Shown here one piece after another: positions 880 through 63,864 of a DNA stretch of 64,000 bases (position 1 is the stretch's first letter; each line of letters begins with the position of its first letter). Location: assembly GCA_002269645.1 (NCBI GenBank), contig NIVC01000942.1, positions 62,001 to 126,000 of the forward strand, written 5' to 3'. Under the pieces are notes generated by a model. The model ran no database searches. It was not told where the DNA came from and worked only from the letters and a program-made list of their open reading frames with translations. This stretch comes from Macrostomum lignano. Taxonomy: Eukaryota. A program made the position numbers and the translations under genes.

Positions 880-926
<47 letters not shown>

Positions 927-933
927 GTCTGTG

Positions 934-970
<37 letters not shown>

Positions 971-973
971 GCC

Positions 974-1014
<41 letters not shown>

Positions 1015-23454: not shown

Positions 23455-24433
23455 ATGCAAATCCATGCTTTTCTGTGCCTGTCGCTGGGCATTTTCCCTG
23501 CAGTCAAAGGCACCAACATTTCGCAGTGGATTCGAGTTCGAGACGACCTGCTCGGCGAGTACACCGAAATCGGAGCCGTGGCTGCCTCAAATGCCGTCGC
23601 GTGCTGCTCGAGCGGAATGACGGCTGCACACGCGGTGCAGTTCGATGAGGCTCAGAGACTGTGCCGACTGTTTGCGTGTCGCGGAGGCTGGCGCGGATGC
23701 AGGAAGTGCAGAAATGCTGCGAACTCCAGCCTGCCGTATGTCTGGGTGAGCTGATTAGTTCTAGTCTCCATGATTTCGTTGAAGCCGTCTCAGCTTCTAC
23801 TGGATGACGGGATTGCTCACATTTCAGGTTCGAAAGCTGGGAGACGGTCGCTCGTGCTGGCGGACATTCCAGCACCGAGTGGACGCCTCCGTCAATTTCA
23901 ACGAAAGCTGGGCCAAATACGCGAGCGGCTTCGGACAGGGCGAGAACGCGAACTTCTGGATCGGACTGGACAATCTGCACCTGCTCACGAGAGACGCCGC
24001 TCTCCCTGTTCGATGGGAGTTCAGCGACTGGAACGGAACTCTGAACTGGATGGAGAACGCCTTCTTTCAAGTCGATAGCGCGACTACAAAGTACAGAGTG
24101 AGCGTCGGAGAGCAGCTGATGGACAGGTCGACTGTGAAGCAGTGCTCCACCAGTAGCGAATCGGACATGAACGGCATGAAGTTCTCGACTTGGGATCAGG
24201 ACAACGATGACTATTCATCGGGAAGCTGCGCTACCTACTATGGTGGAGGCTGGTGGATGCAGTACTGCTGCTGCTTGTTCCCGAACGGTCCGTACGTGAG
24301 GCCGCCTGCCGCGCTAAATCTCCCGAAATACTCCCGTGGAATCTGCGTGAAGAACAGAGACGCCAATTACCCTTGGAACAAGGAGTACTCGATGAAGACG
24401 TTTGAAAGCCTGCTGATGGTTGGCATGGACTGA
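23455..24433 (+). CDS. Secreted PAN-like + fibrinogen-related domain (FReD) protein, copy 1: join(23455..23745,23828..24433)
   Basis: Signal peptide MQIHAFLCLSLGIFPAVKG. Cys-rich PAN-like segment ACCS..HAVQFDEAQRLCRLF. GT-AG phase-0 intron. FReD motifs WRTFQHRVDASVNFNESWAKYASGFG, FWIGLDNLHLLT, MNGMKFSTWDQDND, CA..YGGGWW...C. Confidence 0.88.
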
Positions 24434-25292
24434 GAGCTGGAAAGGAATAAAAAGTTTGCATGTTAGCAATAAAATCACAAGTGAAAGTCGGACATCAACA
24501 GACAGACAGGAACAGGAAGAAGTCACTGATCGCATGCTCTAATTGTGATGCACTGCGCTGCTTTTCTCGAGTCTAAGGAAGACAACATCGTAATTATGAA
24601 ATATACTTATGAAAGTAAACTTGCAGCCCTCTTGTGCGATGTGAGACAAGTTGTTAAGTTCTGGCATCAAAATAACTCGACTCAAACTTCAATATTTATC
24701 TATTGAAATTCTGTAATAGCGTCGTACGTGTATTCGAAAAGTTCACAGGGCTACGTGAGTAAAGTTAGCTTGGAATGCGTTAAAATTACGTTTTAAACAC
24801 GCCGGAAGGAGCCAAGCAAGTCAAAGCAGTTGCGAAATAAGCTGGCAGAGACCGAGAAAGCAAATCCCATGCCCAACGGAATTGGAGCCAAGCGTTATTT
24901 GTTTATTTGTTGATTCGTAAAAAATACATAAACAAATTGAGAAATTGCGGCGTAGACAAGATGAGCCGGGTGCATGGGCAACCCCCCCGCCTACACCAGA
25001 GTATAGAGGCATGTACAGCAGCAGGTAGAGTATACGATTGCAATAACACCTGAACCTCACTTAGGTTATGTCAGCTAGCTAAAAGTGGAATCGAACGCCG
25101 GAGGATACTGCCAGGACCCTTTTCCGTCCCTGTAGACTTCTTCAGTTGGCCTGACCAAGACGGGATTTCATCCATCAGCTGGGACGAACAGAAATTTCTT
25201 GCACTCTGCTCTTGCATGGCGACATTTCTTTGCCCGCCATGCAAGCTTTTCGCGCTACACTCTACTTATCAGTAGACTAAGTCTGAAAGATA

Positions 25293-25878
25293 ACAGACAC
25301 ATCGGTAGCAGACACTTCAGTAACAGACACTTCGGTAACAGACACTTCGGTAACAGACACTTCGGTAACAGACACTTCGGTAACAGACACTTCGGTAACA
25401 GACACTTCGGTAACAGACACTTCGGTAACAGACACTTCGGTAACAGACACTTCGGTAACAGACACTTCGGTAACAGACACTTCGGTAACAGACACTTCGG
25501 TAACAGACACATCGGTAACAAACACTTCGGTAACAGACACTTCGGTAACAGACACTTCGGTAACAAACACTTCGGTAACAAACACTTCGGTAACAGACAC
25601 TTCGGTAACAGACACTTCGGTAACAAACACTTCGGTAACAAACACTTCGGTAACAAACACTTCGGTAACAAACACTTCGGTAACAGACACTTCGGTAACA
25701 AACACTTCGGTAACAAACACTTCGGTAACAGACACTTCGGTAACAGACACTTCGGTAACAAACACTTCGGTAACAGACACTTCGGTAACAAACACTTCGG
25801 TAACAGACACTTCGGTAACAAACACTTCGGTAACAAACACTTCGGTAACAGACACTTCGGTAACAGACACTTCGGTAA
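25293..25878. repeat. 15-bp minisatellite (CACTTCGGTAACAGA), about 39 copies
   Basis: Direct; it explains the NRHFG/LPKCL/VTEVS/YRSVC ORFs. Confidence 0.95.
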
Positions 25879-26598
25879 GAGCTGCACCAGAAAGAGCTTT
25901 GCAGCCTAAATAGCCATGGTGGCTTCGAGCACAGCAGCAATTTAATGAGACAGTTGGTTCGCAGCCAGCGAGGTGTCAAACGGCCATTCCGCCGAACCTG
26001 AGCACGCACGCAGACACACGCTCACGCAGGGTGTACAGCGGTCCCCGAAACTTTTTCATAGTCTGTCACATGCAGATGCGAAATATCTAATGACTAGAAT
26101 CGCAAACACCAGGGGCGAAATACCGCTCTAAAGTATTTTTAAAAGTAGCCGATCGCAAATGCTCAAATTTTGAACTATTAGCTTGCTTTCAGTTGGTTTC
26201 GCATTAAGCACGGTTGAAATATGAATCATCTCCTCAGTTCCCTTTGCTCCGTCGGCCCCGCAGTTGGCCCCTTATAGCTCTCATTTCTACAGATGAACAA
26301 CCAATGCACTCGTTCGTTGGAGGAGCCACGGAGCAAAAAAATAGAAAATAGTTGAGTCCTGACTCCGACCAAATGATACTGATAAATAAATCTATTTTTA
26401 ATCAGTGCTCAAGTGAACCAACTTGACACCCTCAGGCAAAATTATTTCTTGCAATGAGCTGATTAAGGACTTGATATGCATCCCTTTGGATGAAATACAG
26501 ATGGATACTTCTGCACTGGGGCGTACAGTGCAGCATAAAAGCCTATTCTACAATGCTTTTATATCATTGAATTTGCCATATGCGAATTCAATGGCAAA

Positions 26599-26796
26599 AT
26601 GCAGCTAAGCCCGTCGCTGGGAATTTTCGCTGCAGTCGAAGGCGGAAACACTTCGCAGTGGATTCGGGTTCGAGACGACCTGCACGGCGAGTACACCGAA
26701 ATCGGAGCCGTGGCTGCCGCAAATTCCATCGCGTGCTGCTCGAGCGGAATGACGGCTGCACACGCGGTGCAGTTCGATGAGGCTCAGAGACTGTGC
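26599..26796 (+). pseudogene. Truncated exon-1 fragment of the PAN-FReD family
   Basis: Near-identical to exon 1 of copy 3, including the upstream TTGCCATATGCGAATTCAATGGCAAA. It has a 12-bp deletion in the signal peptide and breaks off after QRLC into AT-rich repeats. Confidence 0.85.
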
Positions 26797-27776
26797 ATTA
26801 TAGTGCATTAATGATATTATTAATAATGACAATAATAATAATAGTAATAATATTAATAATGATAAATGGAGTAGACTTCTGTGCACCCTGGCGCAACGCC
26901 TTCAGCGAGATCGTCCCACAACCAGCACTGACGCAATTCGGCCCTTTCCTGAGCACAGACAAGCTCGCCAATTCTGTACTCAGACACCACTCACACACTC
27001 GCTCACACAGGGACACAGGGTGTACATCGGTCCTGAGGTCTTGAAGTACTCGTAGGCTGAAATTTGACTTTAACTATTAATATTTCCAATTTTTAACTTG
27101 AATGCAGACTGTTACTGACTGACTGAGAAGTCGGTACGGCTTCGTATGACTTTTACTCTCACCGAGTTGATGCAAGTGTTGAGTTATTAGTGCTACCTAC
27201 AATTCATGTCATCGATTCGATGAGAACTAGCCTAGATTGAACAGACTGAAATGCTAATGCAGAGACCTAGGTTCGAATTCTGAGGTTGTGTGACAATGTC
27301 GCTTGGAGTGCGCCAGGGTGCACAAGGATCTTCAGACTGGATCTTTAAAACTGTTTAGATATTATATTAGAGATAAAAGCAACTTTCTTGGTATCTCAAA
27401 TCAGCTTCATAGAGCATAGCTTTTTTGATTGCAATACCCAGAAGATACAGTTCATATTTTCTGCATTGGAAAACATTTGAAAAGTTCGTGTATGTTAAAT
27501 TATGCAAACTTAAATAAGCCTGAATATGAATATCAACAGTAGGAGCCTCGCATGCTGCAGCTGACACCCTTGCAGCTTTATCAACTGTAGAAAGAAATTG
27601 TGCAAAATTCAAATTGCAAATTGTTGCTATAAAAGGAAATTTGCTATTTAAAACGAAATTTACTCGTATCTCCGCAGCGTACTGTGCTACTAACAGTAGA
27701 AGCTGATTTGAAGTGAATATCCCTTTCTTTGCTCTTTTTCTTGCTTTCGTTAAAGTATAGCTGCAAGCCGGTCCAC

Positions 27777-29315
27777 TTAGCCGCGGACAATGACCTCCTC
27801 ATTGGTGGTTCCGGGCGCGGCTACCGAGAGCTCCGTTGATGCAAACAGACGGCAGAGCTGCAGCTTTCGGGAGAATTTCACAGCCCGACAGCTGACGGAT
27901 GCCTGGCATTCGGTGGCGCACTCGACCAGGTGCGAGCGATGGACGATCGCTCAGGTGAGATGGAGACGGCGGTGCGGTCAGCTGCCATCTCGAAGTACTG
28001 GCTGCCACCTGGGAACATCAGCAGTTGGCTTTTGTGTCAACGATGGCATCATCAAAACAAAGATTGGCGTCACATGACACCACAGACTAGCTCATGGCGC
28101 CTATCTGACACCCTAGATTGGCGCCCCCTCTGACAGTCGTGATTGGCGCCACATGACACCAGACTAGCTCATAGCGCCTATCTGACACCCTAGATTGGCG
28201 CCCCCTCTGACAGTCGTGATTGGCGCCACATGACACCAGACTAGCTCATAGCGCCTATCTGACACCCTAGATTGGCGCCCCCTCTGACAGTCGTGATTGG
28301 CGCCACATGACACCAGACTAGCTCATAGCGCCTCATCTGACACCCTAGATTGGCGCCTCATCTGACAGCCTCGATTGGCGCCCCTCTGACAGTCTTGATT
28401 GGCGCCACATGACACCAGAATAGCTCATAGCGCCTCATTTGACACCCTAGATTGGCGCCTCATCTGACAGCCTTGATTGGCGCCCCCTCTGACAGCCTTG
28501 ATTGGCGCCTCCTTTGACAGTCTTGATTGGCGCCTCATCTGACAGCCTCGATTGGCGCCCCCTCTGACAGCCTTGATTGGCGCCTCATCTGACAGCCTCG
28601 ATTAGCGCCTCTCTGACAGCCTTGATTGGCGCCTCATTTGACAGCCTCGATTGGCGCCTCTCTGACAGCCTTGATTGGCGCCTCATTTGACAGCCTCGAT
28701 TGGCGCCCCCTCTGACAGCCTTGATTGGCGCCACATCTGACAGCCTTGATTGGCGCCCTTTCTGACAGCCTCGATTAGCGCCTCTCTGACAGCCTTGATT
28801 GGCGCCCCCTCTGACAGCCTTGATTGGCGCCACATCTGACAGCCTTGATTGGCGCCCTATCTGACACCCACCTAAAACCTTGGCTCACAGACCCGCTTTT
28901 TGACAACCATGGTTCCGATTACTTGCCGTTATAGACCAGCCTGAAGACCGAGTTTCGGTAGCCTCCACCGCATTTCTGAACAAGCCGAGCCGCACTCAAT
29001 CTCCTGTCTCCGGCCGAATCTGCCGTAGGAGTTGCTGCAGAAGCACTCGTTGCCAATTTGCAGTGCAAAGTACAGAAAGTCCAGCGCTGAGCAAATGTCA
29101 CTGCAGAACTCGTGAGTCATGCCAGAGTTTAGTAGGAAATAATTTTTCACCAAGTGCCCCTGGACGGAGCTCTGGCCAGCGAGTCCCGCCAGGTCCCGGT
29201 CAGCGGTGTCGATGAAGTACCCGATGTAGCTGAAGCTGACCATTTTTTCTCCAATCGAGCTCTGCTGCCACAGAAGCAGAAGAAGCAACACGAAGCTGAG
29301 GCAATGTCTGGGCAT
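27777..29315 (-). pseudogene. Signal peptide-WSC-PAN gene, disrupted (or mis-assembled): exons complement(28927..29315) and complement(27777..28008)
   Basis: Exon 1: MPRHCLSFVLLLLLLW signal peptide, then a WSC pattern YIGYFID..RDL..MTHEFC..C....YFALQ.G.ECFC.NSYG..G....C...C, then a frameshift to KCGGGYRNSVF. Exon 2, hand-translated: GSQYFEMAADRT..(1-nt shift)..HRSHLVECATECQASVSCRAVKFSRKLQLCRLF, a PAN/apple pattern. A phase-1 GCAAGT donor at 28926 matches the TTCCCAG acceptor at 28009. The intron is filled by a minisatellite. Confidence 0.7.
28060..28868. repeat. ~20-bp minisatellite (TGACAGCCTTGATTGGCGCC) with ~68-bp higher-order units, in the WSC-PAN intron
   Basis: Direct tandem units. Confidence 0.9.
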
Positions 29316-29589
29316 TGGGATGTCGATTGAGGGCTCAGAAATAGTTCAGAGAAAATGAGGGACAACAGAAAAATTTATGCTTCTTAAATTCCCAAAAATA
29401 TCCGACAAATGCTTTTTAAACTGCTGAACGTCAATGGGAGATGCCATTACATATTACATATTCATACTTTCTCTTCCGGTTAAAACGGAAGCTGCATCCA
29501 TTTCCTGTCCGACTGCTGCACGCGATTGCATGCGCTGCTGACTGATGCTCTGGTTGTCAGCACTTTGTTTCCATCGGAGTCGGTCTGAG

Positions 29590-31698
29590 TGTGTCTTAGT
29601 GTCTGTCCCAGTATCTCTGTCCTAGTGTCTGTCTTAGTGTGTCTTAGTGTCTGTCCCAGTATCTCTGTCCTAGTGTCTGTCTTAGTGTGTCTTAGTGTCT
29701 GTCCCAGTATCTCTGTCTTAGTGTCTGTCCTAGTGTCTGTCTTAGTGTGTCTTAGTGTCTGTCCCAGTATCTCTGTCTTAGTGTCTGTCCTAGTGTCTGT
29801 CTTAGTGTCTGTCCTAGTGTCTGTCTTAGTGTGTCCTAGTGTCTGTCTTAGTGTGTCTCAGTGTCTGTCCTAGTGTCTGTCTTAGTGTCTGTCCTAGTGT
29901 CTGTCCCAGTATCTCTGTCTTAGTGTCTGTCCTAGTGTCTGTCTTAGTGTGTCCTAGTGTCTGTCTTAGTGTGTCTCAGTGTCTGTCCTAGTGTCTGTCT
30001 TAGTGTCTGTCCTAGTGTCTGTCCTAGTGTCTGTCTTAGTGTGTCTTAGTGTCTGTCCTAGTGTCTGTCCTAGTGTCTGTCTTAGTGTGTCTTAGTGTCT
30101 GTCCCAGTATCTCTGTCTTAGTGTCTGTCCTAGTGTCTGTCTTAGTGTCTGTCCTAGTGTCTGTCTTAGTGTGTCCTAGTGTCTGTCTTAGTGTGTCTCA
30201 GTGTCTGTCCTAGTGTCTGTCTTAGTGTGTCTTAGTGTCTGTCCCAGTATCTCTGTCCTAGTGTCTGTCTTAGTGTGTCTTAGTGTCTGTCCCAGTATCT
30301 CTGTCTTAGTGTCTGTCCTAGTGTCTGTCTTAGTGTGTCTTAGTGTCTGTCCCAGTATCTCTGTCTTAGTGTCTGTCCTAGTGTCTGTCTTAGTGTCTGT
30401 CCTAGTGTCTGTCTTAGTGTGTCCTAGTGTCTGTCTTAGTGTGTCTCAGTGTCTGTCCTAGTGTCTGTCTTAGTGTCTGTCCTAGTGTCTGTCCCAGTAT
30501 CTCTGTCTTAGTGTCTGTCCTAGTGTCTGTCTTAGTGTGTCCTAGTGTCTGTCTTAGTGTGTCTCAGTGTCTGTCCTAGTGTCTGTCTTAGTGTCTGTCC
30601 TAGTGTCTGTCCTAGTGTCTGTCTTAGTGTGTCTTAGTGTCTGTCCTAGTGTCTGTCCTAGTGTCTGTCTTAGTGTGTCTTAGTGTCTGTCCCAGTATCT
30701 CTGTCTTAGTGTCTGTCCTAGTGTCTGTCTTAGTGTCTGTCCTAGTGTCTGTCTTAGTGTGTCCTAGTGTCTGTCTTAGTGTGTCTCAGTGTCTGTCCTA
30801 GTGTCTGTCTTAGTGTCTGTCCTAGTGTCTGTCCCAGTATCTCTGTCTTAGTGTCTGTCCTAGTGTCTGTCTTAGTGTGTCCTAGTGTCTGTCTTAGTGT
30901 GTCTCAGTGTCTGTCCTAGTGTCTGTCTTAGTGTCTGTCCTAGTGTCTGTCCTAGTGTCTGTCTTAGTGTGTCTTAGTGTCTGTCCTAGTGTCTGTCCTA
31001 GTGTCTGTCTTAGTGTGTCTTAGTGTCTGTCCTAGTGTCTGTCTTAGTGTGTCTTAGTGTCTGTCCTAGTGTCTGTCCTAGTGTCTGTCTTAGTGTGTCT
31101 TAGTGTCTGTCCTAGTGTCTGTCCTAGCGTCTCTCTCAGTGTGTCTTAGTGTCTGTCCTAGTGTCTGTCCTAGTGTCTCTCTCAGTGTGTCTTAGTGTCT
31201 GTCCTAGTGTCTGTCCTAGTGTCTGTCCTAGTGTCTCTCTCAGTGTGTCTTAGTGTCTGTCTTAGTGTCTGTCTTAGTGTCTGTCTTAGTGTCTGTCTTA
31301 GTGTCTGTCTTAGTGTCTGTCCTAGTGTCTGTCCTAGTGTCTCTCTCAGTGTGTCTTAGTGTCTGTCCTAGTGTCTGTCCTAGTGTCTGTCTTAGTGTGT
31401 CTTAGTGTCTGTCCTAGTGTCTGTCTTAGTGTGTCTTAGTGTCTGTCCTAGTGTCTGTCTTAGTGTGTCTTAGTGTCTGTCCTAGTGTCTGTCTTAGTGT
31501 GTCTTAGTGTCTGTCCTAGTGTCTGTCCTAGTGTCTCTCTCAGTGTGTCTTAGTGTCTGTCCTAGTGTCTGTCCTAGTGTCTCTCTCAGTGTGTCTTAGT
31601 GTCTGTCTTAGTGTCTGTCTTAGTGTCTGTCTTAGTGTGTCTTAGTGTGTCTTAGTGTGTCTTAGTGTGTCTTAGTGTCTGTTTTAGTGTCTGTCTTA
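29590..31698. repeat. 2.1-kb satellite of 10-12-bp units (TAGTGTCTGTCC / TAGTGTCTGTCT / TAGTGTGTCT) with higher-order blocks
   Basis: Direct. The near-identical ORFs ending at 29873 and 30461 imply a ~588-bp higher-order repeat. Confidence 0.93.
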
Positions 31699-32052
31699 GA
31701 AGTGCGGCATGCAACTCATCGGGCGAGCAGCTTGAGTGTATGAAGCTCAGCATCATGTCGAGAGACTCCTTTGAGGCAGAGTGGTGAGATTGTGGGACTC
31801 CCAGGCCTTAATTAAACTGAGACGTATGCCATTCTTTTCCAGCATTATGAAGAGCAGAGGCTCTGCATGGTAGGTCTTAAGTCCAGGTGTGTCCAGAGTG
31901 AGCGGCAAGTGTTTCTTAAAGGTGAACTTGATGAGTTTAAACAGCTGGCCCTGGACTGTGCTCAGCTGTATCACGATGTCTTCCTCTTGGAAGCTGAAGC
32001 TCACTTTGAGCTCGTTGGTCGAGCTCCCGGTCTGGTCGCCCAAATCGCCCAA
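31698..32052 (-). pseudogene. Fragment of a Mab-21/cGAS-like nucleotidyltransferase (C-terminal helical region)
   Basis: ELKVSFSFQEEDIVIQLSTVQGQLFKLIKFTFKKHL..GLKTYHAEPLLF.MLEK....KAWESHNL, then after frameshifts KESLDMMLSFI..S.SPDE and CMPHF. This matches the Mab-21 pattern SFS..E..l...Q.....LlK....gL.sYH.Kt.lf...e....W...nl....L.....PH(Y/F)F. The catalytic N-terminal part is not seen, and the 3' end is cut by the satellite. Confidence 0.65.
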
Positions 32053-33160
32053 AGGTGAAATTTATCATTATTATACGAGCTATGGAAGCAGTTTTCGAAT
32101 TCTGTTCTCACAGAAACTGCTGCAGCATGGCACGTGTCGTGTGCAGGCCGCAGACCGCACGCCGTGGCTTTCTCTGAGCTTTTCTAGTACACAATGTGCG
32201 TCAAAGCGTGGTTCGGACCGTGTCATTTTTTATTTATAACATTAAATGCTCAAAAAATTGTTAATATAAATGTCAGAAGAGAAACTGAAAGCACTTTATT
32301 ATAGTAAATATAAGATGCGGCTCAAGACTATGGTAGCTTAAAATCTTCAAAAAAACTTTTGAGTGGGTTGTATTGAATTGGGTAGGGAATAGGTAAATTA
32401 AATGATTCCAGAGCTGGTGGTCAGTATTTTTTTCGCGGTCAAAGCTGATGACAACGGCATCGGCTTAATTAATTGAGTTCCCAGGAATTTGACGTCTTGC
32501 ATGGCATTTCCACCATTGGTCATTTAAAGAGGCATCAAAAACGCAAAACTTTCTAAGCAAGACCATACTCCACTGATCACCACATTAGATGGACTCGATT
32601 AAACTCGCAATTCGTGGAAAAATATCTCTGCAAGCCGGGGATGAAGCTGACTCGAGTCTCCAGACTTTTCCCCACAAATGGAAATTTGTTCTCCCACCAA
32701 TGTAATGCAAACTTGAGAGCTTTTGAAAAATAAGTGTAATGCACGCAATGGGTTAGTGAGCCACTGGAAGCCACTGTGACGGATTCGGCTAGTGAAATCG
32801 CAGAATTTGAGTCACTTTGCCTCTTACATCCGTGGGAACCATAACAGATGGCATCCATCTGAAGCTGCTCTCTCTTCACTGCGGAACATTCTCTAGATTT
32901 CATAGAAATGGAATTCCAAATCAGATAAACAATTCACAATTTCTCCGCGACTGTGTCTAAAGAATTGAGTGCAAGTAGGTGTACCGCTGCCACTGGATAC
33001 AGTGGAGCAACACTAAGAATGCCTTCCCGTTTGACTTGCAAAAAGAGAATTTCACCCCAAAGGGGACGAAACTAAGCATAAAACTCCTCCCATTCTCATG
33101 CCACCGCAGGGGCAGATATCCCGAATCCGTGAATCTGCATATCCTGCATCTGCGCCAGAG

Positions 33161-34140
33161 ATGCAAATCCATGCTTTTCTGTGCCTGTTGCTGGGAATTT
33201 TCGCTGCAGTCGAAGGCGCCAACACTTCGCAGTGGATTCGAGTTCGAGACGACCTGCTCGGCGAGTACACCGAAATCGGAGCCGTGGCTGCCTCAAATGC
33301 CGTCGCGTGCTGCTCGAGCGGAATGACGGCTGCACACGCGGTGCAGTTCGATGAGGCTCAGAGACTGTGCCGACTGTTCGCGTGTCGCGGAGGCTGGCGC
33401 GGATGCAGGAAGTGCAGAAATGCTGCGAACTCCAGCCTGCCGCATGTCTGGGTGAGCTGATTAGTTCTAGTCTCCATGATTTCGTTGAAGCCGTCTCAGC
33501 TTCTACTGGATGACGGGAACTGCTCACATTTCAGGTTCGAAAGCTGGGAGACGGTCGCTCGTGCTGGCGGACATTCCAGCACCGAGTGGACGCCTCCGTC
33601 AATTTCAACGAAAGCTGGGCCAAATACGCGAGCGGCTTCGGACAGGGCGAGAACGCGAACTTCTGGATCGGACTGGACAATCTGCACCTGCTCACGAGAG
33701 ACGCCGCTCTCCCTGTTCGATGGGAGTTCAGCGACTGGAACGGAACTCTGAACTGGATGGAGAACGCCTTCTTTCAAGTCGATAGCGCGACTACAAAGTA
33801 CAGAGTGAGCGTCGGAGAGCAGCTGATGGACAGGTCGACTGTGAAGCAGTGCTCTGACAACAGTACTTCGAGCATGAATGGTCAGCAGTTCTCGGCTCCG
33901 GATCAGGACAATGACGTTGCTACAGGCGGAAGCTGCGCTGCCTTCTACGGTGGAGGCTGGTGGATGCAGGCCTGCTGCTGCTTGTTCCCGAACGGTCCGT
34001 ACGTCAGCCTGCCTGCCGCGCTGCACCTTATCACATACTCTCGTGGAATCTGCGTGAAGGACTCTGCTGGCATCTACCCGTTTAACAAGCGGTACTCGAT
34101 GAAGACGTTTGAGTGCCTGCTGATGGTTGACATGGCCTGA
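33161..34140 (+). CDS. PAN-like + FReD protein, copy 2: join(33161..33451,33535..34140)
   Basis: Same exon structure, splice sites and motifs as copy 1; intact frame. Confidence 0.88.
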
Positions 34141-35140
34141 GTGCCAAAGCTTTTTCCAACATTAAAATAACTCTGATTGTTTGACCCTTGGGTAATCATC
34201 ACTCAGCTTTTGCTGCGTGAGAGCAGTCGAGTGCTTGTTTGCATGGAAGGCAAATAACTTGGGTTAAGTTTTATAAAGAATCATAAAGAATGGGCACTTG
34301 CTAAAGAAGCAAGTGCCTATTTTAAAGAAATGCTGTACCCAAGGAACATGGGGTTAATAACTCTGCTGTTCGGGACCACTTGCTACAGTGTGATAGCTGT
34401 TGTAATTAAGAGCCACCTCAACTATTTTAAGTCATTGACTCTTGTAGACAAGATCATAAATTTACCATACTTGACGCCATGTACATTAAGGCTCTCAAAC
34501 CAAACACGAATCTTCCAGCTGATTTTCGTGCACAAGTCTGAAATGAATGTCACCGCGACTGGAATCGACTCAGGGGTCGTAGCGTTCACCACAGAGCTGC
34601 TCTTCACCCTAATCTTGAACAGTCCTTCAAACGTATCCGTCGATGGTGCCAGCCGTGAGCACACGAGCCACCTGTATGCGATAGATTTTTTTGCCTAAAT
34701 CTTGCTCAAAATTAGCGAATATGCAATCTCACTGCTGATTAATGGCAGTCGCCTATCAATAGGACTCAAAAATATTTCTACCTGCCTTAAAGATAAGTGT
34801 ACGAGCAAAGTACCTGTCAAGTGTTCGAATGGCCAAAGGTTTTTAGAGAAGTTCGATGCCAGACAACATAATTGGTCTTTAAAACAGTTTCCGTGATACT
34901 GTGACGCTTCGGTGCCTGAATGCTCATTACAGTTATGAATTATGCATGCGTGTGTACGTGTAGAAACCATCAGCAGTGCTTATAAAGATTACAGTAATCT
35001 TTAACGGAGTCGAACGGAGGAGATCTTCATCTACTCTTCATCTGGCCTATAAAGCCAGCCTCGCCGTGATAAGGTAAGCTTCTAGACTGCATGTCGTTTG
35101 GAGGCATCAAAGTGCAGCTAAGCTCGTGAAGGCGGTAGCG

Positions 35141-35802
35141 ATGGACATCCCGTGTTTGCTGCTTACGCTAGCTGTAATACTTGGCAAGCCTGATGTCGAA
35201 TGTCAGAGGGTATCCATTGCCGAATGGCGCCTGACAAGAGAAGACTTGAAAGGGGAATACGAGCTTATGGGTATGCAAGCATGAAGAGCGATGGCCTGCG
35301 CCATTGCTGGCATGAGCGCAGCGCATGCTGTGCAATCCGATGAAGCTCAGAGTCTGTGCTGACTGTACCTGTGCCTTGGAGGCTGAAATGGATGCAGAAA
35401 ATGCAGGAACGCCCGAAATTCAAGCTTTCCGCATGTCTGGCAGAGTTGAACGCAGAGAAATCTTGAGTCTCTGAGTTTGATTTTCCATTTTTACAAAATC
35501 TGCACTAAACTTCCATGTTCGAAAACTGAAACGTCAATTTTTTCTGGCGGACATTCCAGCACCGAGTGGACGCCTCCGTCAATTTCAACGAAAGCTGGGC
35601 CAAATACGTGAGCGGCTTCGGGCAGGGCGAGAACGCGAACTTCTGGATCGGACTGGACAATCTGCACCTGCTCACGAGAGACGCCGCTCTCCCTGTTCGA
35701 TGAGAGTTCAGCGACTGGAACGGAACTCTGAACTCTGAACGCCTTCTTTCAAGTCGAAAGCGCGACTACGAAGTACAGAGTGAGCGTCGGAGAGCAGCTG
35801 AT
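35141..35802 (+). pseudogene. Degenerate PAN-FReD paralog: diverged exon 1 with stops, plus a near-identical exon-2 fragment (35544-35802)
   Basis: MDIPCLLLTLAVILG..IAEWRLTREDLKGEYELMG* aligns with ISQWIRVRDDLLGEYTEIG. The donor is lost (TGG|CAGAG), there is a TGG>TGA change at ~35700, and the C-terminal subdomain is missing. Confidence 0.8.
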
Positions 35803-36189
35803 GAAGAGGCCGGAATCGGCATGTCTGCCGGTCTCCTCGCTAACTGTGGATCGACTTTCGCCTTGACTTCTGGCAGCGCTCACAACCCCCTGCAAATTAT
35901 TGTAACTGCGAGTTTTCCTGCCTACATGTACTTGCAACGGTAAATTAAATTAAAGATCCGCACCTTTGCTGTTGGGGCCGGAGCCGACAAAAAATATGGA
36001 AGCTGTTTCCAATTGGCAAATTATATTTCAGCTTCTGTGTTTAATTGCGGGTTGCGAAATGAAAGAAGAAAATTTAATGGCTTACTTTGTTGCCTTCACC
36101 ACTGGGAATGAAAGCAGATGGTTGCAGTTCCATGTGGGAGAGAAACTTGTTTGCGACAAACAAAAAAATAAAAAAGCCCCGCATGCAAG

Positions 36190-39180
36190 CTAACAGTTAG
36201 AGAAGGGCGCGTCAGATGGCGCGCCGCAGAGCCTGAGAGCGGACAAAGTACGCCCCATTGGCAATGTCATGTGCCCCAGCGTCGGATAGGAGGCAGTCCA
36301 CGTATCGACGGGTTTGGGCCTGACCAGAACTGAATGAGCCATGCAAAGTGAGCAGCAGGACGTCCTGAACAGGTGGGGACAGTAGCCCTCGGCCCGGATC
36401 ACGTGGATCGTCAGTTGAAGTCGCCGACGGCGCAGGATGATGGAGGAGCGCTGCAGTTTGGCCCAATCGTATAGGGCCTCGGTCCCGACACTCGTCAGCT
36501 CGAAAGGCCGCATGGAGCAGCCCTGAGTGCGCTGAGTCCAAGTGCCGCTCCAACGTAGCCGACAGCGTCCACGTCTCGGCGTTGTATAGCAGGACCGTTT
36601 CGACCACTGCCTGCCACAGCCACAGCTTCTCTGGCGGTCGGGCAGCGCTTCTGACTGAAGGACGTGTTGGATCGTTTGGAAAGCCGGCCAGGCAAGTCCT
36701 CTGAGTCGCCGGAGGTCTTCCTCCATGTGGCGCACCAGACCGCCGAGGTAGGTGAACCGCTGGCAGCGTGCGAGCCTGGTTCTGCCCGTCTGCGCCTCGG
36801 CAAGTCTGGTCGGCTAGCGCAGTCAGCACCTTGATCTTCAGCGTGTTGACAACCAGATCGACACTCGATGCCACCTTGACCAGCCTATCGATCTGGCACT
36901 GCGTGCCTTCAACGGACGAGGACAGGAGGGCGAGGTCTTTGGCGTAGCTAAGCACGCCCAGGCGCTTTTCGCCGTGGCGGCGACCGATGCGTCTGCGAAG
37001 CAGGAAACCATCATCAGCCGCGAGGGGAGTGCGGTCCGAAGCACCCAGTCCAGCAGCAGGACGAAGAGGAACGGCGCCAGCGCGTCGCCCTGCAGAACTC
37101 CCAATGAAGTGTCAAACAGGTCAGACAGGCCGTCCGCCGTCACCACAGCAGCTCGAGTGTCGCAATACAGCGACATGACTGCGTTAGTTAGCTTCTGCGG
37201 GACCCGGTGAGCTCAAAGGACAAAAGGAAGCTCGGCTCTCAACACTGAGTCGGACGCCTTTCGAAAGTCAACGAAGACAATGATCAGCGTAGACTGGCGG
37301 TGCGCGTCTCATCGATTACATGGCGGAGTGCGAGGATCTGTCACTGTATCGCGTTGCGGCCGGAATCCGTTCTGCTCGTACCGCAGATAATGGTCCAGCA
37401 CCGACTGCAGGCGATCGAGTAGCAACCGGTTGAAGACCTACGCCGTGCAAGACATCAGCGAGATCCCGCGGTGGTCTTCCTTCCGCGTTGTCCCTGCCTT
37501 CGTCTGGCGCGAGCGCCTTGCCGCCTCGTGTTTTCCAAACAAACAGCACAACGAGCTCCGTGGTGACTGGGCTGGAGCAGAAGTCCTTCTCATCTGGAAG
37601 CGGCGTGTCTAGTGGGAGCGCAAAACTGGCGGGCAGCGGCGACGCCGGTGGGTTCACGTTGACGGCGACGAAGTCGCACAATTCCTTCCTTCGCTCCTCC
37701 GGGGTGTCGCCGGCCAAGTTCAGCGCCACGCGCTTTCAGCACCCCGTCAGAGTCCGGACGGCCGTCCACACTACGCGACTCTTCACGTCGGGGCCGGCTG
37801 CAGTGATGGTCCGGATCGCGTCGTCGACAGCATTCTGCTGCCTCTCGTCTAGAAGGCGCTCAAACACGTCTTCAGCGTTGCCCGTGGGCCGCCGGTTTCT
37901 GCGGAGTCGCTCGATATTAAGCTGCGCCTGCCTGATGGTCGGGTCGCTCTGCCAGACAGGCAGCGATTTCTGCGCCGGCCGCATCAGCGTGACTGTCTGC
38001 TCCGCAGCGACTCTAGTGGTGGTGCTGATGTCGGAATACTCCGCCTCGCTCTGGTCTCCAAGCGCGCCGACGAAGGCGCCCGCGAATTGACGCTTCACGT
38101 GGGTGTCCAACAGAGCGCGATATTAGCGTCGTGGCCGCTGCTTTGGCGGTCGGTAGAGCTGGTCGCGGAGCCGCAGGTCGCAGAGCAGGAGTCGGTGGTC
38201 TGACCGGAGAGCCAGTGGAGCCATGGTGTCGCAGTTGGTGAGGCGGCGGTGCGAACCAGAGCATGATCGAGCTGCGCCAGTCTCCTCGTAGCGTTCCGCC
38301 CGCTTGCGTTCCGCCGCCTTCTCGATAGAGAGCTCGCAAAGGTGACCAGGCGGGCAGGGGGCTTGCGGAACTGGGTGTTCGCGGACTCCAGGTCCAGCCG
38401 GTCAAGCAGGTCCTCCAGCGCATCAGCGTAGACGTTCTCGCGTCCCTCAACAAAGGGCGAGCGCTCGGACCTCCCGCGGAACTGCGTTCATGTCTTCGAG
38501 CACTGTTAGCGTTTTGCGGTTTGGCACGAGCCTCCTCGAGGTGATCAGCGGTGGGTGCATACGCGCAGAGCAGCCGAATGCAGCGGCCACGCAGGCGCAG
38601 GTCGACCCGCATCAGTCGCAGGGAGAGCGAAGTGCAGTGCACACTCAGCTGAAGGCGCGGTCCGATCAGTACGCCGACATTGCCCGGCCGCGGTCGTCTG
38701 CGGACGTGTACAGGATGCTCCAGCCGGCCCCGAAGTCCTCAGAGTAGAGCACCGGCTCAGCCACGATAGAAAACTTCGTGCAGCATGATGAGGTCCAGAT
38801 GTAGGTCATGGGTCAGCTGGACGAGGATCATGCGACGCCAGGGGGGCATTAGAGTTAGGCAGTTCATCGTGCCGAGTCTGAGGCGCGTCCACCTGGTACA
38901 GCTAGGGCCAGATGAAGATTGGCCTTCAAACCGCGCCAGCCGGCGGATCCATAGTGGGAATTGCAGGGACTGGCGCAACAGGCAACAGGCGCCTGGCCGC
39001 GCCACGAGTCGCCCTCGCCGGTTGAGCTCGCGCCGCCGCTCAGCGCCGACCTCTGAGTGTCCCTGGTGTACGAGCTACTGAGCTTTGCTGCCGCAGCCGA
39101 GGCGCGGCCGTCCGAGCCAACCGAGGTCATGCGCAGTCTGGTGATCTGGCCGCGATGTCAGGAGGTGTCAGCACTATTTG
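36190..39180 (-). mobile_element. Decayed non-LTR retrotransposon (RTE-like LINE): APE endonuclease plus reverse transcriptase with many frameshifts
   Basis: APE fragments (LIMLHE, IRLLCAYAPTA, SDHRLL). RT motifs FVDFRKASDSV, GVLQGDALAPFLFVLLLDWVLR, LSYAKDLALL (YADD degenerate). C-terminal VVETVLLYNAETWTL. Ends are approximate and no TSD was identified. Confidence 0.88.
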
Positions 39181-39508
39181 CACGGGCGTGCAAATATTGG
39201 CGTGGGCGTGCAAATAAAATGGTTTGCAAATACACTGGCTTGGAAATATAATGGCTTGCAAATAAATTGGCTCGCAAATATAATGGCTCCGTCAATTTTC
39301 TTCAAGCTTTCATGAAATTACCATGATTCTCCGAGTGCTCATTAGCACAATAAAACGCACCTAAACGCTTTCCTATTTGGCTGGGAAAAGGACCATCCCG
39401 CGCTTGTCGCAGGAAATTTATCCTCAGGATAGGCGCGAAAAAAACATAAAAACCTATTTCCCTGGCTCTTGAGGCTCTGACTTTGCCATATGCGAATTCA
39501 ATGGCAAA

Positions 39509-40485
39509 ATGCAGCTCACTGTGATTCTAAGCCTGTCGCTGGGAATTTTTGCTGCAGTCGAAGGCACCAACATTTCGCAGTGGATTCGAGTTCGAGACGA
39601 CCTGCTCGGCGAGTACACCGAAATCGGAGCCGTGGCTGCCTCAAATGCCGTCGCGTGCTGCTCGAGCGGAATGACGGCTGCACACGCGGTGCAGTTCGAT
39701 GAGGCTCAGAGACTGTGCCGACTGTTCGCGTGTCGCGGAGGCTGGCGCGGATGCAGGAAGTGCAGAAATGCTGCGAACTCCAGCCTGCCGCATGTCTGGG
39801 TGAGCTGATTAGTTCTAGTCTCCATGATTTCGTTGAAGCCGTCTCAGCTTCTACTGGATGACGGGAACTGCTCACATTTCAGGTTCGAAATCTGGGAGAC
39901 GGTCGCTCTTGCTGGCGGACATTCCAGCACCGAGTGGACGCCTCCGTCAATTTCAACGAAAGCTGGGCCAAATACGCGAGCGGCTTCGGTCAGGGCGAGA
40001 ACGCGAACTTCTGGATCGGACTGGACAATCTGCACCTGCTCACGAGAGACGCCGCTCTCCCTGTTCGATGGGAGTTCAGCGACTGGAACGGAACTCTGAA
40101 CTGGATGGAGAACGCCTTCTTTCAAGTCGAAAGCGCGACTACAAAGTACAGAGTGAGCGTCGGAGAGCAGCTGATGGACAGGTCGACTGTGAAGCAGTGC
40201 TCCACCAGTAGCGAATCGGACATGAACGGTATGAAGTTTTCAACCCGAGATCAGGACAATGATCGTGATGAAGGCAGCTGTGCTGTCCGTCATAACGGAG
40301 GCTGGTGGATGCAGGCCTGCTACTGCATGAACCCCAACGGTCCGTACGTCAGCCCGCCTGCCGCGCTGTACCTCACAGATTACGCGCAGGGAATATGTCT
40401 GAAAAATGACGCCTTTGTATTTCCGTGGAACAATCGGTACTCCCTGAAGACGTTTGAGTGTCTGCTGATGGTTGATGGGAGCTAA
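39509..40485 (+). CDS. PAN-like + FReD protein, copy 3: join(39509..39799,39883..40485)
   Basis: Same structure as copies 1 and 2; signal peptide MQLTVILSLSLGIFAAVEG; intact frame. Confidence 0.88.
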
Positions 40486-41525
40486 AATTACGTGACGTAT
40501 TTTAAACTATCAATCACTTGACCGACTGGAGACAGCTCTATAATCATTCAATTGCTAACTTACACTCTCTGCAAATCAAAGCGACGTTGATCAAATTTGT
40601 GATCTAAAGAATTGTGTGGGTTAATTATTTTTAATAACATCGAGTTTAATAAATCATTGGAACTGTTGCCGAGAATTTCATTAATAGCTTGGCTTAATTA
40701 AGCAGAGTTTCTTTGCAAGCCAAGCAAAAATCGCCTACAAAATATGCTTGGGGCGTCGAGTTGCGTTGGCTTCGTTCATTCCATCAGAATGCGTTTAGAT
40801 TTTTCAACTATATTTCTGTCAATGTCCTGTTGTCTGCCAGCTTTTACTTCAAATCCTCATTTCACTCTCGCTATTTAGCAATTCATTACTTCTAGTGGGG
40901 CTTTTGTCTCTGCACCATTCCTTTCACTCGAGAGCATGTCTTGCCTCTCAGCTATTTTCTTTTAATGCGTAAAAACTTTTCTCTGAATACGAATAGCGTA
41001 TGATGGACAGGTCAGATCAAGACCTCTGCTCACCAATAGCATTTTTTGGCTCGAGTCAATTTTTAGGCATCGTCTGTGGAAAAAACATTTAGACTTTTCA
41101 GTAGTTTTAGCTCTGTTTTTATTTATTACGGTGAATTTGAAAATTGACTAAGTTGAGCATCAAATAACTAACACAAAATATAGATTTCAACTGGCACGTG
41201 ACGAACAGATAAGGAATGTACGCTCGTAGCTAGCACAAAGTTCATTCATTCTATTATGAAATACAAATTCTTTTACGTACATTAAATTTGATGATAACAA
41301 GCGCTCAATCGATGTACTCTGTACTGTGAAGAGCTTTACAGCCCCTCCAACCAATCACGGTTAAGATTCGCATTCTTCATGCGTACATTAGGGACAGAAA
41401 GTACACGGCTAAATCAGTCTGATTGCCCTAAAATTCGTTGACAGATCTGCGGGGCAAGGCGGTGCCAGGTGCCAGTGTTTTCTTTGCATCGTCAAGTCAG
41501 GCCTGGGACATTGGAATCTTCAACC

Positions 41526-43048
41526 ATGAGCTGCTGCTGCTGTTGTTACAGACGCCAAGTCAAAGAGATCAAAGTCAGGGCGGTGTCTACAGAAGCCACC
41601 CGCGGCAAGGTGGCTGATCACTGCATGAACATCTCTGCCGAGAAGCAGCAGGTCTTTAATTCAGCTCTGCTGTCGCTGATCAACGCCAAACGCAAGGAAT
41701 GTCACGTGCAGCCGTTAATCCTGTGCCCCACTCTGTGCAAGGTGGCCAAGACCGTGTGGAATGCCAGGGCCCAGGTGCCGCACGGCCTGTACGCCATTCC
41801 TAACAACGGCTTCGAAGTGATTGTTGAAGTGAACAAGGTCGGGCAGCGGGAAAGCAAGACTCAGGCCTACTTTGTTGACTGCATGTCCTATACTGATAAT
41901 GTTGTCCGGTCGAAGCGGGACCTGCCAGGGGCTGTGTTTCACTTCTGGACAAACGAAGGAAAGTAAGTCTAGTTTAGCAGTTTATTCAGGTAGATCTTGT
42001 TTGTTAGTTTATTTAGGTAAATCTAGTTTGGTAGTTTATTCAGGTAAATCTAGTTTGGTAGTTTATTCAGGTAAATCTAGTTTGTTAGTTTATTCAGGTA
42101 AATCTAGTTTGATAGTTTATTCAGGTAAATCTAGTTTGTTAGTTTATTTAGGTAAATCTAGTTTGGTAGTTTATTCAGGTAAATCTAGTTTGTTAGTTTA
42201 TTCAGGTAAATCTAGTTTGGTAGTTTATTCAGGTAAATCTAGTTTGGTAGTTTATTCAGGTAAATCTACTTTGTTAGTTTATTCAGGTAAATCTAGTTTG
42301 GTAGTTTATTTAGGTAAATCTAGTTTGTTAGTTTATTCAGGTAAATCTAGTTTGGTAGTTTATTCAGGTAAATCTAGTTTGTTAGTTTATTCAGGTAAAT
42401 CTAGTTTGGTAGTTTATTCAGGTAAATCTAGTTTGGTAGTTTATTCAGGTAAATCTAGTTTGTTAGTTTATTCAGGTAAATCTAGTTTGGTAGTTTATTT
42501 AGGTAAATCTAGTTTGTTAGTTTATTCAGGTAAATCTACTTTGTTAGTTTATTCAGGTAAATCTAGTTTGTTAGTTTATTCAGGTAAATCTACTTTGTTA
42601 GTTTATTCAGGTAAATCTAGTTTGTTAGTTTATTCAGGTAAATCTAGTTTGGTAGTTTATTTAGGTAAATCTAGTTTGGTAGTTTATTCAGGTAAATCTA
42701 GTTTGTTAGTTTATTCAGGTAAATCTAGTTTGGTAGTTAATTTAAGACAGAGGTCAGTAACGCGGACATCTTCAAAGTCTCCATCCTCGCCGCCCTCTGC
42801 TCAGGTACACCACGAGCCAGCCCAGCAAGGGGCCGCTGTCCGAAAGCTACCCGGAACTCGACAAAGAAGCCCGCGCCAGCCTGGCAAAGTGCCGCGGCCA
42901 GTTCCTGCCGATGCTGCTGGGCCAGGGTGACTTCGCCAACCAGCGAATCGGCCTGCATCTTGGCCGCTCCAACCGGAGGCTGAGGTCGGCCCGCGAGCCC
43001 TACAGTGTGGTGGCCGTGTTCGATCAGAAGGACCTGGCTGACTTCTGA
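41526..43048 (+). CDS. Divergent CAP/SCP (GAPR-1/GLIPR2-like) protein A: join(41526..41962,42805..43048)
   Basis: FNSALLSLINAKRKECHVQPLILCPTLCKVA resembles GAPR-1 helix 1 (F...L..hN.yR..h...PL.L...L...A). VFHFWTNEGKY matches the conserved W..E...Y. GQFLPMLL..RIGLHLG and PYSVVAVF match GHFT.mvW...iG.G and vVA.Y. Phase-2 GT-AG intron. N-terminus MSCCCCC, no signal peptide. Confidence 0.7.
41985..42740. repeat. 27-bp minisatellite (GTAGTTTATTCAGGTAAATCTAGTTTG), about 28 copies, filling the intron of CAP gene A
   Basis: Direct; it explains the VVYSGKSSL ORF. Confidence 0.93.
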
Positions 43049-43652: not shown

Positions 43653-44170
43653 CAGGGGCGCCCGCTAATTAATGATGCGAGCTATAATTAATCATATATG
43701 AGTAAGGAATTATATATTTAACAAATTTGTGATTCATTTTTTCATAAGCAGCATCTCCTCTTGATGTTTCGAGAAGCTAAAGGCACGCGCTGTCCTAAAA
43801 TTGAGTCAGGCTCTAAATAAAATTGACTTCAACTAATGAGGTGTTGTTAGCAAACCCTTTTTTACACATTTACAAACCTCAATACAGATGAACTTCAGTG
43901 ATTTTTGGCATTGGATTAAAGAGAGAGAAAGAGAGTTGTTATCATGTAGAGGGGTGGCGGCCTCGGACCGACCATCCACCCAACCCCAGCCAATCAGCGT
44001 GCACTACCTCTTGTAAAATGAGTTTTGTACACCTGCTTGTACGCCGTTTGTCATTAAAATTCCAAAACCAAGAACGTGCAGTGCATTCTTTAAAACCTCA
44101 AGCTGCGAGCTTCTGTCAGCTTCTTGGCAAACGAGAGACAATTCGACGGCTTGTGAAGGTCTTTGCAGCA

Positions 44171-44901
44171 ATGAGCTCTATGTACAAAAGGACTAAACCA
44201 GAAGTCCCGACGACTCAGGAACACGAAGAAGTCTTGAATGTTAATGTCTGTCGTCCCATTTCACAGAAGAAACGGGCCGCTTTCAACGAGGCCCTGGTGT
44301 CGCTAATCAACGCCAAGAGACGAGAGTTCCTGGGTCCGCTCGTGCAGCTCAATGAGCAGCTGTGCAAGATCGCCGAAAAAGCCTGGAACGTCTCGGCCAA
44401 GCAGCCGCATGGCCTGGTAGCCATGCCGTACAACCAGTTCTTGGCCCCTGACTACACAGGTAAGGCCAATTCAGACTCCGGGGAAGGGAAGTTCTACGAC
44501 TGCTTGTCCTACACGGACAATGTCATCCGGTCGAAGCGAGAGCTACCAGAGGCGGCCGTTCACTTCTGGACTACCTGTGGCAGGTAATGCGTCATGATTA
44601 ATGAGCTTAGCTAAGGACTTGAGTCATAGTAAAAATAAATTCGCTACTTGCTTACATGCAACCCTACCATTTTTCCTGCAGGTACACGTCCCGACCGGGG
44701 AAGCGTGCTCTACCGCAGAGCTATCCACCGATCGATGAGACATTTCGCGCGGAGCTGGAGAAATGCCGGGGCTCCTTTTTTCTAATATTGGCAGGCCAGT
44801 GGAAATTCTCTGCCAACAGGCGAATCGGCGTGCACTTCGGCAAGCTGAGTCTGTGCTCATCCAGCAAAACGCCCTACAGTGTTGTTGTCGTGTTCGGCTA
44901 A
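44171..44901 (+). CDS. Divergent CAP/SCP protein B: join(44171..44583,44682..44901)
   Basis: Paralog of gene A: FNEALVSLINAKRR, DCLSYTDNVIRSKRELPEAAVHFW, RIGVHFG, PYSVVVVF. Same phase-2 intron position. Confidence 0.72.
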
Positions 44902-63797: not shown

Positions 63798-63864
63798 GTA
63801 AGTGCCCCAATTGTGCTTTTTAGATATAGCTGTTGTGTACTTTGGTACTGGTGCCGACTGAAGC

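Follow-up and report, generated by a model that had tools for sequence, protein, structure and literature searches.

A 64,000-nucleotide window of the genome of the flatworm Macrostomum lignano (contig NIVC01000942.1 of assembly GCA_002269645.1, positions 62,001 to 126,000 of the forward strand) contains, between window positions 23455 and 40485 of the plus strand, a tandem cluster of three intact two-exon genes whose products carry a fibrinogen-related domain (FReD). These genes, termed c1, c2, and c3, are nearly identical over an internal segment and clearly divergent outside it, a pattern that bears the marks of gene conversion. An earlier note, made from the same sequence, had described the cluster as a PAN-FReD family with a homogenised framework and a hypervariable, mosaic ligand-binding tip; the three intact genes, together with the peptide strings and coordinates that it quoted, all proved correct on re-checking. 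The gene models are these:

23455-24433 (+): c1, intron of 82 nt, protein of 298 residues
23455..23745 (+): c1 exon 1, from the ATG to a GTGAGC donor; signal peptide and Cys-rich N-terminal domain, codons 1-97
23746..23827 (+): c1 intron, 82 nt, GT..AG, phase 0
23828..24433 (+): c1 exon 2, FReD B and P subdomains, codons 98-298 and stop; Pfam Fibrinogen_C E=8.5e-35
33161-34140 (+): c2, intron of 83 nt, protein of 298 residues
33161..33451 (+): c2 exon 1
33452-33534 (+): c2 intron, 83 nt
33535..34140 (+): c2 exon 2
39509-40485 (+): c3, intron of 83 nt, protein of 297 residues
39509..39799 (+): c3 exon 1, with a distinct signal-peptide start, MQLTVILS
39800-39882 (+): c3 intron, 83 nt
39883..40485 (+): c3 exon 2, one codon fewer in the Ca2+ loop than c1 and c2

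All three introns are bounded by GT..AG and lie in phase 0, and the c1 intron differs from those of c2 and c3 at 23811 and 23813 only, a 1-nt indel included. Exon 1 of c1 is translated in frame with exon 2, and AATAAA motifs stand at +13 and +35 past the stop codon. The closest protein matches of the three copies are all from M. lignano. UniRef models P0175, P0001, and P0177 match c1, c2, and c3, respectively; P0001 equals c2 residues 18-269, and P0177 matches c3 residues 3-268 along its entire length.

The relationship among the copies changes abruptly within the gene. Pairwise identity, followed in 50-nt sliding windows along c1 coordinates, stays at 0.96-1.00 from ~23509 to ~24108, intron included, then drops to 0.54-0.90 over the final ~285 nt of the coding sequence and to ~0.2-0.4, that is, background, past the stop codon. 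The resulting island of ~670 bp is 98-100% identical and spans the greater part of exon 1, the entire intron, and the first 107 codons of exon 2, with an abrupt fall in identity to 55-80% following ...KQCS. Upstream of the ATG, the 5' flanks of c1 and c2 are 50-86% alike (~81% in part), and that of c3 cannot be aligned. The island is called the core in what follows, and the remainder of exon 2 the tail:

23479..24147 (+): core in c1 coordinates; equivalents at ~33185-33854 in c2 and ~39533-40202 in c3; for c1-c2 the block extends upstream to ~23434
24148..24433 (+): tail of c1, P subdomain and last beta-strand, codons 205-298
33855-34140 and 40203-40485 (+): equivalent tails of c2 and c3

A two-breakpoint scan for low-divergence blocks, in which the inside of each block was compared with the rest of the gene by Fisher test, recovered this contrast in all three pairs (p = 1e-26 to 6e-44):

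23455-24147: c1-c2 block, differences 10/694 inside and 64/286 in the remaining gene
23479-24183: c1-c3 block, differences 13/706 inside and 88/274 in the remaining gene
23485-24147: c2-c3 block, differences 7/664 inside and 97/316 in the remaining gene

Within 23520-24147, 4 differences are private to c1, 4 to c3, and none to c2, so that c2 would be either the donor or an unchanged consensus. The sliding-window identities and the block scan bear out the near-identity of exon 1, intron, and early exon 2 that the earlier note had described, and the sharp divergence that follows. Its proposal that the framework was homogenised by conversion also stands: identity in the intron and at synonymous sites matches that of the protein, and the sequence on either side has diverged. 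Because the identity spans intron and silent sites and is bordered by old sequence on both sides, we think it probable that the three genes are old FReD paralogues whose scaffold was recently overwritten by interlocus gene conversion, with the divergent, constrained P subdomains being kept.

Two extra pieces of the family, absent from the earlier note, lie in the same interval:

26599..26805 (+): fragA, an exon-1-only fragment, 93% identical to the core, ending after ...EAQRLC
35210..35809 (+): fragB, a truncated pseudogene whose exon-1-like part is clearly diverged from c1-c3
35544..35803 (+): converted patch within fragB, which shares 96% identity with the c1-c3 exon-2 core but carries a deletion of 5 bp

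The 5' end of fragA is c3-like. Aligned with c1 residues 20-197, fragB is 40% identical in amino acids (tblastn), with in-frame stops (read by eye from the alignment) and an intron that cannot be aligned. Since fragB is diverged and yet 35544-35803 is 96% identical to the core, an old dead copy has received a recent patch of ~260 bp, and this patch shows conversion at the locus directly. It stops ~27 nt short of the c2 boundary.

The ages of core and tail were estimated from synonymous (dS) and non-synonymous (dN) divergence by the Nei-Gojobori method, with codons 20-204 taken as core and codons 205-298 as tail; the codon tests cover the three window genes and a further pair of loci, L001 and L002, described below. 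Core dS is 0.016-0.024 and core dN 0.007-0.009 (dN/dS 0.29-0.44). In the tail, c1-c2 gives dS 0.45 and dN 0.22 (dN/dS 0.50), and the pairs with c3 give dS 0.95 and dN 0.25-0.29 (dN/dS 0.27-0.30). Silent divergence is 20-45 times higher in the tail than in the core, in line with the diverged flanks, and bootstrapping of the tail dN/dS places its upper limits at 0.51-0.96, with 0-2% of replicates at or above 1. Given the contrast in dS between core and tail, and tail dN/dS ratios of 0.27-0.50, the tails are best read as old paralogous lineages under purifying selection, not as hypervariable, and the recent event would be the conversion of the core; high tail dS points to age, not speed. The G+C content at third codon positions (GC3) of the window genes is 0.71-0.72 in the core and 0.63-0.73 in the tail, with no clear signal of GC-biased conversion there, and in L001/L002 the core is just slightly higher. 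At 0.09-0.32, dS is low in codons 236-256, which could mark a second small tract, with too few sites to call.

The protein affected by this pattern is recognizably a FReD protein. Against Pfam Fibrinogen_C (PF00147), c1-c3 score 120-125 bits (cutoff 22; E~1e-35) over residues 106-255, which cover positions 41-189 of the 221 in the profile and leave positions 1-40 unmatched. A sequence search of the PDB returned fibrinogen gamma (E=3e-25) and ficolins (E~1e-21), and an AlphaFold2 model built from the family alignment (pLDDT 87.4, pTM 0.83) was matched by Foldseek to ficolin-2, ANGPTL2, and fibrinogen gamma in the PDB (E~1e-17, TMt 0.74-0.78). The predicted products are secreted FReD proteins made up of a signal peptide, a Cys-rich N-terminal domain (N-domain) of ~80 residues, and the B and P subdomains. 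The canonical A subdomain of the FReD, with its N-terminal disulfide (C...VyCDM), is missing from c1-c3, where the family-specific Cys-rich domain precedes CWRTFQ. The collagen-like Gly-X-Y region that is a hallmark of ficolins does not occur in the 298-residue proteins, and for the one or two IgSF domains that precede the fibrinogen domain in molluscan FREPs, no Ig-type Pfam match was obtained at E<=1 in the full proteins or at E<=10 in the N-domains.

The tail starts ~10 residues into the P subdomain and contains the Ca2+ loop and the pocket disulfide, so the divergent part is indeed the FReD P subdomain, as the earlier note had supposed. All three copies have the D220-Q-D222-N-D224 motif and the pair C231...C244 with its 13-residue spacing; the Ca2+ loop is of canonical length in c3 and one residue longer in c1 and c2, with the motif recognized by sequence and metal binding predicted. 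The residues of the S1 acetyl site of FIBCD1 (PMC3908420) were mapped onto the copies by spacing from sequence anchors, with the following equivalents in c1/c2/c3:

Lys381: D / S / D
Tyr405: Y / Y / H
Asn413: Y / A / A
His415: C / C / Y
Tyr431: Y / Y / Y
Ala432: S / S / A
Trp443 (ambiguous mapping): N / I / V

By this anchor-spacing map, 6 of the 7 positions homologous to the FIBCD1/tachylectin-5A pocket vary among the three copies, as against 42 of the 94 aligned residues in the tail overall (hypergeometric p=0.03), and variable residues would fall at the ligand pocket as had been proposed, judged by spacing and not by superposition. The net product would be a set of lectin-like proteins with a common scaffold and three different predicted pockets. 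By analogy c1-c3 may bind acetylated or carbohydrate ligands, and an immune role is suggested from family resemblance only. Extra family-specific cysteines lie at residues 203, 245-246, 270, and 291 (codons in 24061-24433 and equivalents). Since C203 and C246 are present together (in c1-c3 and in the M. lignano proteins P0002, P0008, and P0035) or absent together (in P0004 and P0012), they may form an additional disulfide, by which the pocket loop would be tied to the C-terminal end of the constant region; C245 and C291 are confined to some of the copies.

The enrichment of variable sites at pocket-homologous positions is one of the observations that favor a truly hypervariable tip, in which positive selection and the shuffling of cassettes by recombination or conversion would have produced a mosaic repertoire. 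Another is the UniRef protein P0178 (M. lignano), a c1-like sequence from outside the window that differs from c1 by 4 changes in the tail (E208Y, Y234N, Y243A, and R255G) and by 2 in the aligned core. We nonetheless judge this explanation improbable, as tail dN/dS is well below 1 in every pair and the bootstrap seldom reaches that value. Per site, synonymous change exceeds non-synonymous change, so the tail goes part of the way toward the mostly synonymous divergence that the earlier note itself had named as evidence against its proposal.

Nor does the tail behave as a patchwork. Among its 104 variable sites, the first 11 in succession (14 of the first 15), at coding-sequence nt 612-643, group c1 and c3 against c2; this run is significant by permutation test (p<1e-4), and it is the sole run that is. 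Tracts end at 24147 in the pairs with c2 and at 24183, ~36 nt later, in c1-c3, and the run is accounted for by this further extension of the c1-c3 conversion tract. Past the extension, the same test finds no significant run among the tail sites. Of the groupings seen there, c1+c2 is represented by 43 sites and the other two by 20 and 26, which fits a ((c1,c2),c3) tree that agrees with the 5' flanks, where c1 and c2 are ~81% alike and c3 is unalignable; patterns shared by two copies are in any case expected of any three-sequence alignment. The strings 'MQAC' and 'FEC', common to c2 and c3, each reflect the change of a single codon in c1 alone. The stretch GMKFST (part of 'STSSESDMNGMKFST', in c1 and c3) is conserved as protein despite 4 synonymous differences, and it would thus be shared through purifying selection and not through exchange. 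A test of the pairwise homoplasy index (PHI) type on the protein tails of subfamily B favors recombination at the shortest window, 5 (p=0.02), but not at windows 10 and 15 (p=0.21 and 0.42). Mosaicism was rejected as a robust feature of the tail, since the run test finds the c1-c3 extension alone and PHI is significant at the shortest window only; what the earlier note took for a mosaic is mostly one longer c1-c3 tract superimposed on a ((c1,c2),c3) tree.

The conversion explanation can be set out as follows. Ancient duplications would have given rise to the tandem paralogues, as dated by tail dS (0.45 for c1-c2 and ~0.95 with c3) and by flanks that align weakly or not at all. Recent non-allelic conversion would then have overwritten an internal segment of ~670-700 bp in all three, leaving ~99% identity. 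The tracts would end in a zone of ~40 nt at the start of the P subdomain, such that each Ca2+ loop and pocket keeps its old sequence. This boundary may be held by selection against overwriting of the pocket, by divergence that blocks extension of the heteroduplex, or by both. Selection against lost specificity and the blocking of heteroduplexes by divergence are established ideas for partially converted gene pairs.

Three other accounts of the core have to be considered. Unequal crossing-over or recent partial duplication could yield chimeras with a young 5' part and old 3' parts, and the tandem array, the minisatellites between copies, and the partial copies fragA and fragB are the kind of setting in which this might occur. 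Such events would have duplicated the 5' flank as well, yet the 5' flanks have diverged; the identity block begins inside or just before the coding sequence, and the location of both block ends within the gene is the signature of non-reciprocal transfer. We therefore hold this account to be very unlikely.

There is a still smaller chance that the core is an artefact of assembly or polishing, with paralogues homogenised by multi-mapped reads or a repeat mis-joined. M. lignano assemblies are repeat-rich, and the UniRef entries P0175, P0001, and P0177 may come from the same or a related assembly. An artefact is nevertheless unlikely because c1 and c3 each keep their 4 private core differences, the intron indel among them, because the boundaries differ by pair, and because the same layout recurs at independent loci, namely at L001/L002 with 6% core divergence and in dozens of other family proteins; moreover, a step from ~99% to ~75% identity is not one that polishing can create. 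Least credible of all is extreme purifying selection at the nucleotide level without any exchange, due to an overlapping antisense open reading frame (ORF) or a functional RNA, as the long minus-strand ORFs that do overlap the cores (23504-24070, 33496-34026, and 39844-40125) are what chance would produce in coding DNA whose GC3 is ~0.72, the intron and essentially all synonymous sites are identical with both sides diverged, and the untranslatable fragB bears the same patch.

Several points weigh against recent conversion between old paralogues, or at least against the detail in which it is drawn here. The case concerns three genomic copies, known from assembled sequence and not from reads, and concerted evolution is deduced from within-genome patterns alone; the proteins themselves are known from sequence and predicted models. 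Nei-Gojobori estimates over 94 codons are noisy, and dS with c3 is near saturation. Locally faster mutation in the tail would inflate dS too, a less parsimonious reading because the non-coding flanks have diverged as well. The pocket map, for its part, is one of anchor spacing to FIBCD1 residues, in which the Trp443 equivalent is ambiguous in c1-c3.

The nature of the N-domain is less clear than that of the FReD. Spanning residues ~20-100, it has the motif W..R(D/E).L.(E/D)Y…C…F(D/N)…C.L..C..G…CRKCR, and it is covered by ~15 among the best 150 of 7,298 FReD matches in a search of 1.84 billion representative proteins; the N-domain-bearing matches looked up among those 150 are all from M. lignano. 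The earlier note had called it a PAN domain, a label for which Pfam (PF00024 clan) gives no match, whether c1-c3 are searched at E<=1 or the N-domains of 12 family members at E<=10. The order of elements in the AlphaFold2 model (E25-29, E36-43, H47-53, E60-64, E69-75) fits the beta-beta-alpha-beta-beta order of a PAN fold, in which a core disulfide links helix and strand, and the top Foldseek match of the isolated N-domain model (pLDDT 74) is the PAN module 1hky, albeit weak (E=1.7, TM 0.36). Profile-profile alignment by hhalign to the PAN domains of Pomacea, Asterias, and Patiria PAN+FReD proteins gave P=0.008 with a probability of just 5%, and in this same weak alignment C50 and C70 are paired with two of the conserved PAN cysteines. 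A profile search with the N-domain returned nothing at E<=0.01 and missed its own family too, and is uninformative. A PAN-like N-domain is plausible but unproven.

The three window genes are not the whole of their subfamily. P0178 and a second UniRef protein of M. lignano, P0176, whose core is the same and whose tail opens with another sequence (KQCSNQ) before being cut, are both from outside the window, and since neither is found in it, at least five loci or alleles of the c1-c3 subfamily would exist. A second subfamily comprises P0025/P0155 and ~35 further clusters at 90% identity, all from M. lignano. Over 16 aligned protein units of this subfamily, a core of 140 columns has a mean entropy of 0.17 bits with 95 invariant columns, flanked by an N-terminal stretch at 1.28 bits and a P-subdomain tail at 0.87 bits; the 7 S1-equivalent positions average 1.92 bits, and the remaining columns of the tail 0.77 (Mann-Whitney p=0.0008). 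A third subfamily was compared at the DNA level through L001 and L002, two loci of assembly GCA_002269645.1, which are 93-94% similar only across exon 1, the intron, and the beginning of exon 2, with unalignable flanks; core dS is 0.12, and the tail is saturated in dS with dN/dS of ~0.15. In all three subfamilies the 3' limit of the core lies past the last strand of the B subdomain and ahead of the Ca2+ loop, at different codons.

There is thus some indication of a family-wide arrangement, which we put forward tentatively and regard as possible but doubtful. The N-domain+FReD family, with its dozens of genes in at least three subfamilies, would act as a germline 'constant/variable' lectin repertoire with a conversion-kept framework and protected specificity modules. 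Recurrent conversion would keep a framework of 140-185 residues identical within each subfamily, ancient P-subdomain modules would differ mainly at the Ca2+ loop and acetyl-pocket positions, and selection would shield these modules from conversion, with the tract limit lying each time at the B/P junction.

The remainder of the window is heterogeneous. Large minisatellites occupy 25291-25878, 28062-28866, and 29592-31699 between the FReD genes, with units of 15 bp (x39, 96% match), 25/50/77/99 bp, and 12 bp (x180). A WSC-domain ORF (Pfam E=4e-11) lies on the minus strand at 28929-29315, between c1 and c2, and the UniRef M. lignano model P0195 is a fusion of WSC and FReD parts, so WSC and FReD genes may adjoin at further loci. 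Directly after fragB, and between it and c3, is a GC-rich block (0.59) with broken ORFs at ~36000-39400 (minus strand), retroelement-like by eye (e.g. ...GVLQGDALAPFLF...), five ORFs of which have no Pfam match at E<=0.01. Four tandem plus-strand ORFs of an unrelated paralogous family follow the cluster at 41469-41966, 43898-44587, 46298-47011, and 48522-49022; they share the motif ...AFN.(A/S)L(L/V)SLIN..R......P L(I/V)L...LC..A..VW...A....GL......F........DC(M/L)(S/L/V)(Y/F)TD(N/V).VR(S/A)K.(D/E)LP(G/E)AVFH(F/Y)W and have no Pfam match at E<=0.01. Identical sets of low-complexity ORFs at 7646-8410 and 10537-11301, 2,891 bp apart, indicate that a block of proline/serine/glutamate-rich repeats was recently duplicated in tandem. 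Ordinary flanking genes, all on the plus strand, are:

502-1743 (+): amidohydrolase-family gene, broken by a CLSV-type minisatellite
2986-5576 (+): CAAX prenyl protease (Pfam Peptidase_M48_N E=4e-59, M48 E=6.5e-20)
20650-21120 (+): weak rhodopsin-type seven-transmembrane fragment
63330-63872 (+): cation-efflux (CDF/ZnT) transporter

Partial concerted evolution of tandem paralogues, in which conversion makes the bulk of a gene uniform and leaves a sub-region of distinct function divergent, has classic examples in the primate red/green opsin genes, RHD/RHCE, MHC, and KIR. The M. lignano genes resemble these in having an island of identity that includes intron and silent sites between diverged flanks, and in that the divergent sub-region coincides with the specificity-determining part of the protein. 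They differ in belonging to a flatworm lectin-like family, in the recurrence of a similar 3' limit in three subfamilies, and in that the comparison is made within a species. Proteins with PAN_1 and FReD domains (PF00024 and PF00147, precomputed assignments) are found in Pomacea canaliculata ('ficolin-like'), Asterias, and Patiria, and they too have a small disulfide-rich N-terminal module ahead of the FReD. These mollusc and echinoderm proteins, however, retain the A subdomain in full (…VYCDMETDGGGW…) and are recognized as PAN by Pfam, whereas the Macrostomum N-domain has no Pfam PAN score and aligns with theirs only weakly.

Ficolins, tachylectin-5A, and FIBCD1 are acetyl-group-binding FReD lectins, and in FIBCD1 the aromatic S1 pocket is made up of Tyr405, His415, Tyr431, and Trp443 (PMC3908420). 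c1-c3 are like them in fold (Foldseek TMt ~0.75), in the D-x-D-x-D motif and the 13-residue-spaced disulfide of the P subdomain, and in having an aromatic residue at the Tyr431 position and, in c1 and c2, at the Tyr405 position. Unlike them, c1-c3 are without a collagen-like or transmembrane part, have a Cys-rich domain in place of the A subdomain, carry Cys/Cys/Tyr at the His415 equivalent and extra cysteines (CCC/CYC, GIC), and in c1 and c2 have one residue more in the Ca2+ loop. The FREPs of Biomphalaria glabrata combine immunoglobulin superfamily (IgSF) and fibrinogen domains, and their diversity is attributed to conversion between genes, to point mutation, and to somatic variation (PMC12074976). 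Like the M. lignano family, they form an expanded invertebrate family with a C-terminal fibrinogen-related domain and gene conversion in its sequence dynamics, but the M. lignano proteins are without IgSF domains, and conversion in them would homogenise the framework while the fibrinogen P subdomain diverges. A literature search found no description of the c1-c3 family or of flatworm FReD repertoires. The expansion of FReD families is well documented, as is conversion in the snail FREPs (PMC12074976), and concerted evolution that is partial and spares a specificity region is likewise a known phenomenon. What is new here is the combination of an unusual N-domain architecture, a homogenised framework, and a divergent fibrinogen P subdomain; it is not a new type of system.

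Two lessons for annotation follow. The divergence of the tail is a measure of age, not of hypermutation, and the N-terminal module is an uncharacterised domain met, in these searches, in M. lignano proteins alone. If the family-wide pattern is true, a tractable, regenerating flatworm would offer a simple genetic system for asking how a uniform scaffold is maintained against many old specificities; MHC, KIR, and the invertebrate FREP families pose the same problem of conversion plus selection. Flatworm immunology, which has few candidate receptors, would in that case gain a concrete set of secreted lectin-like genes.

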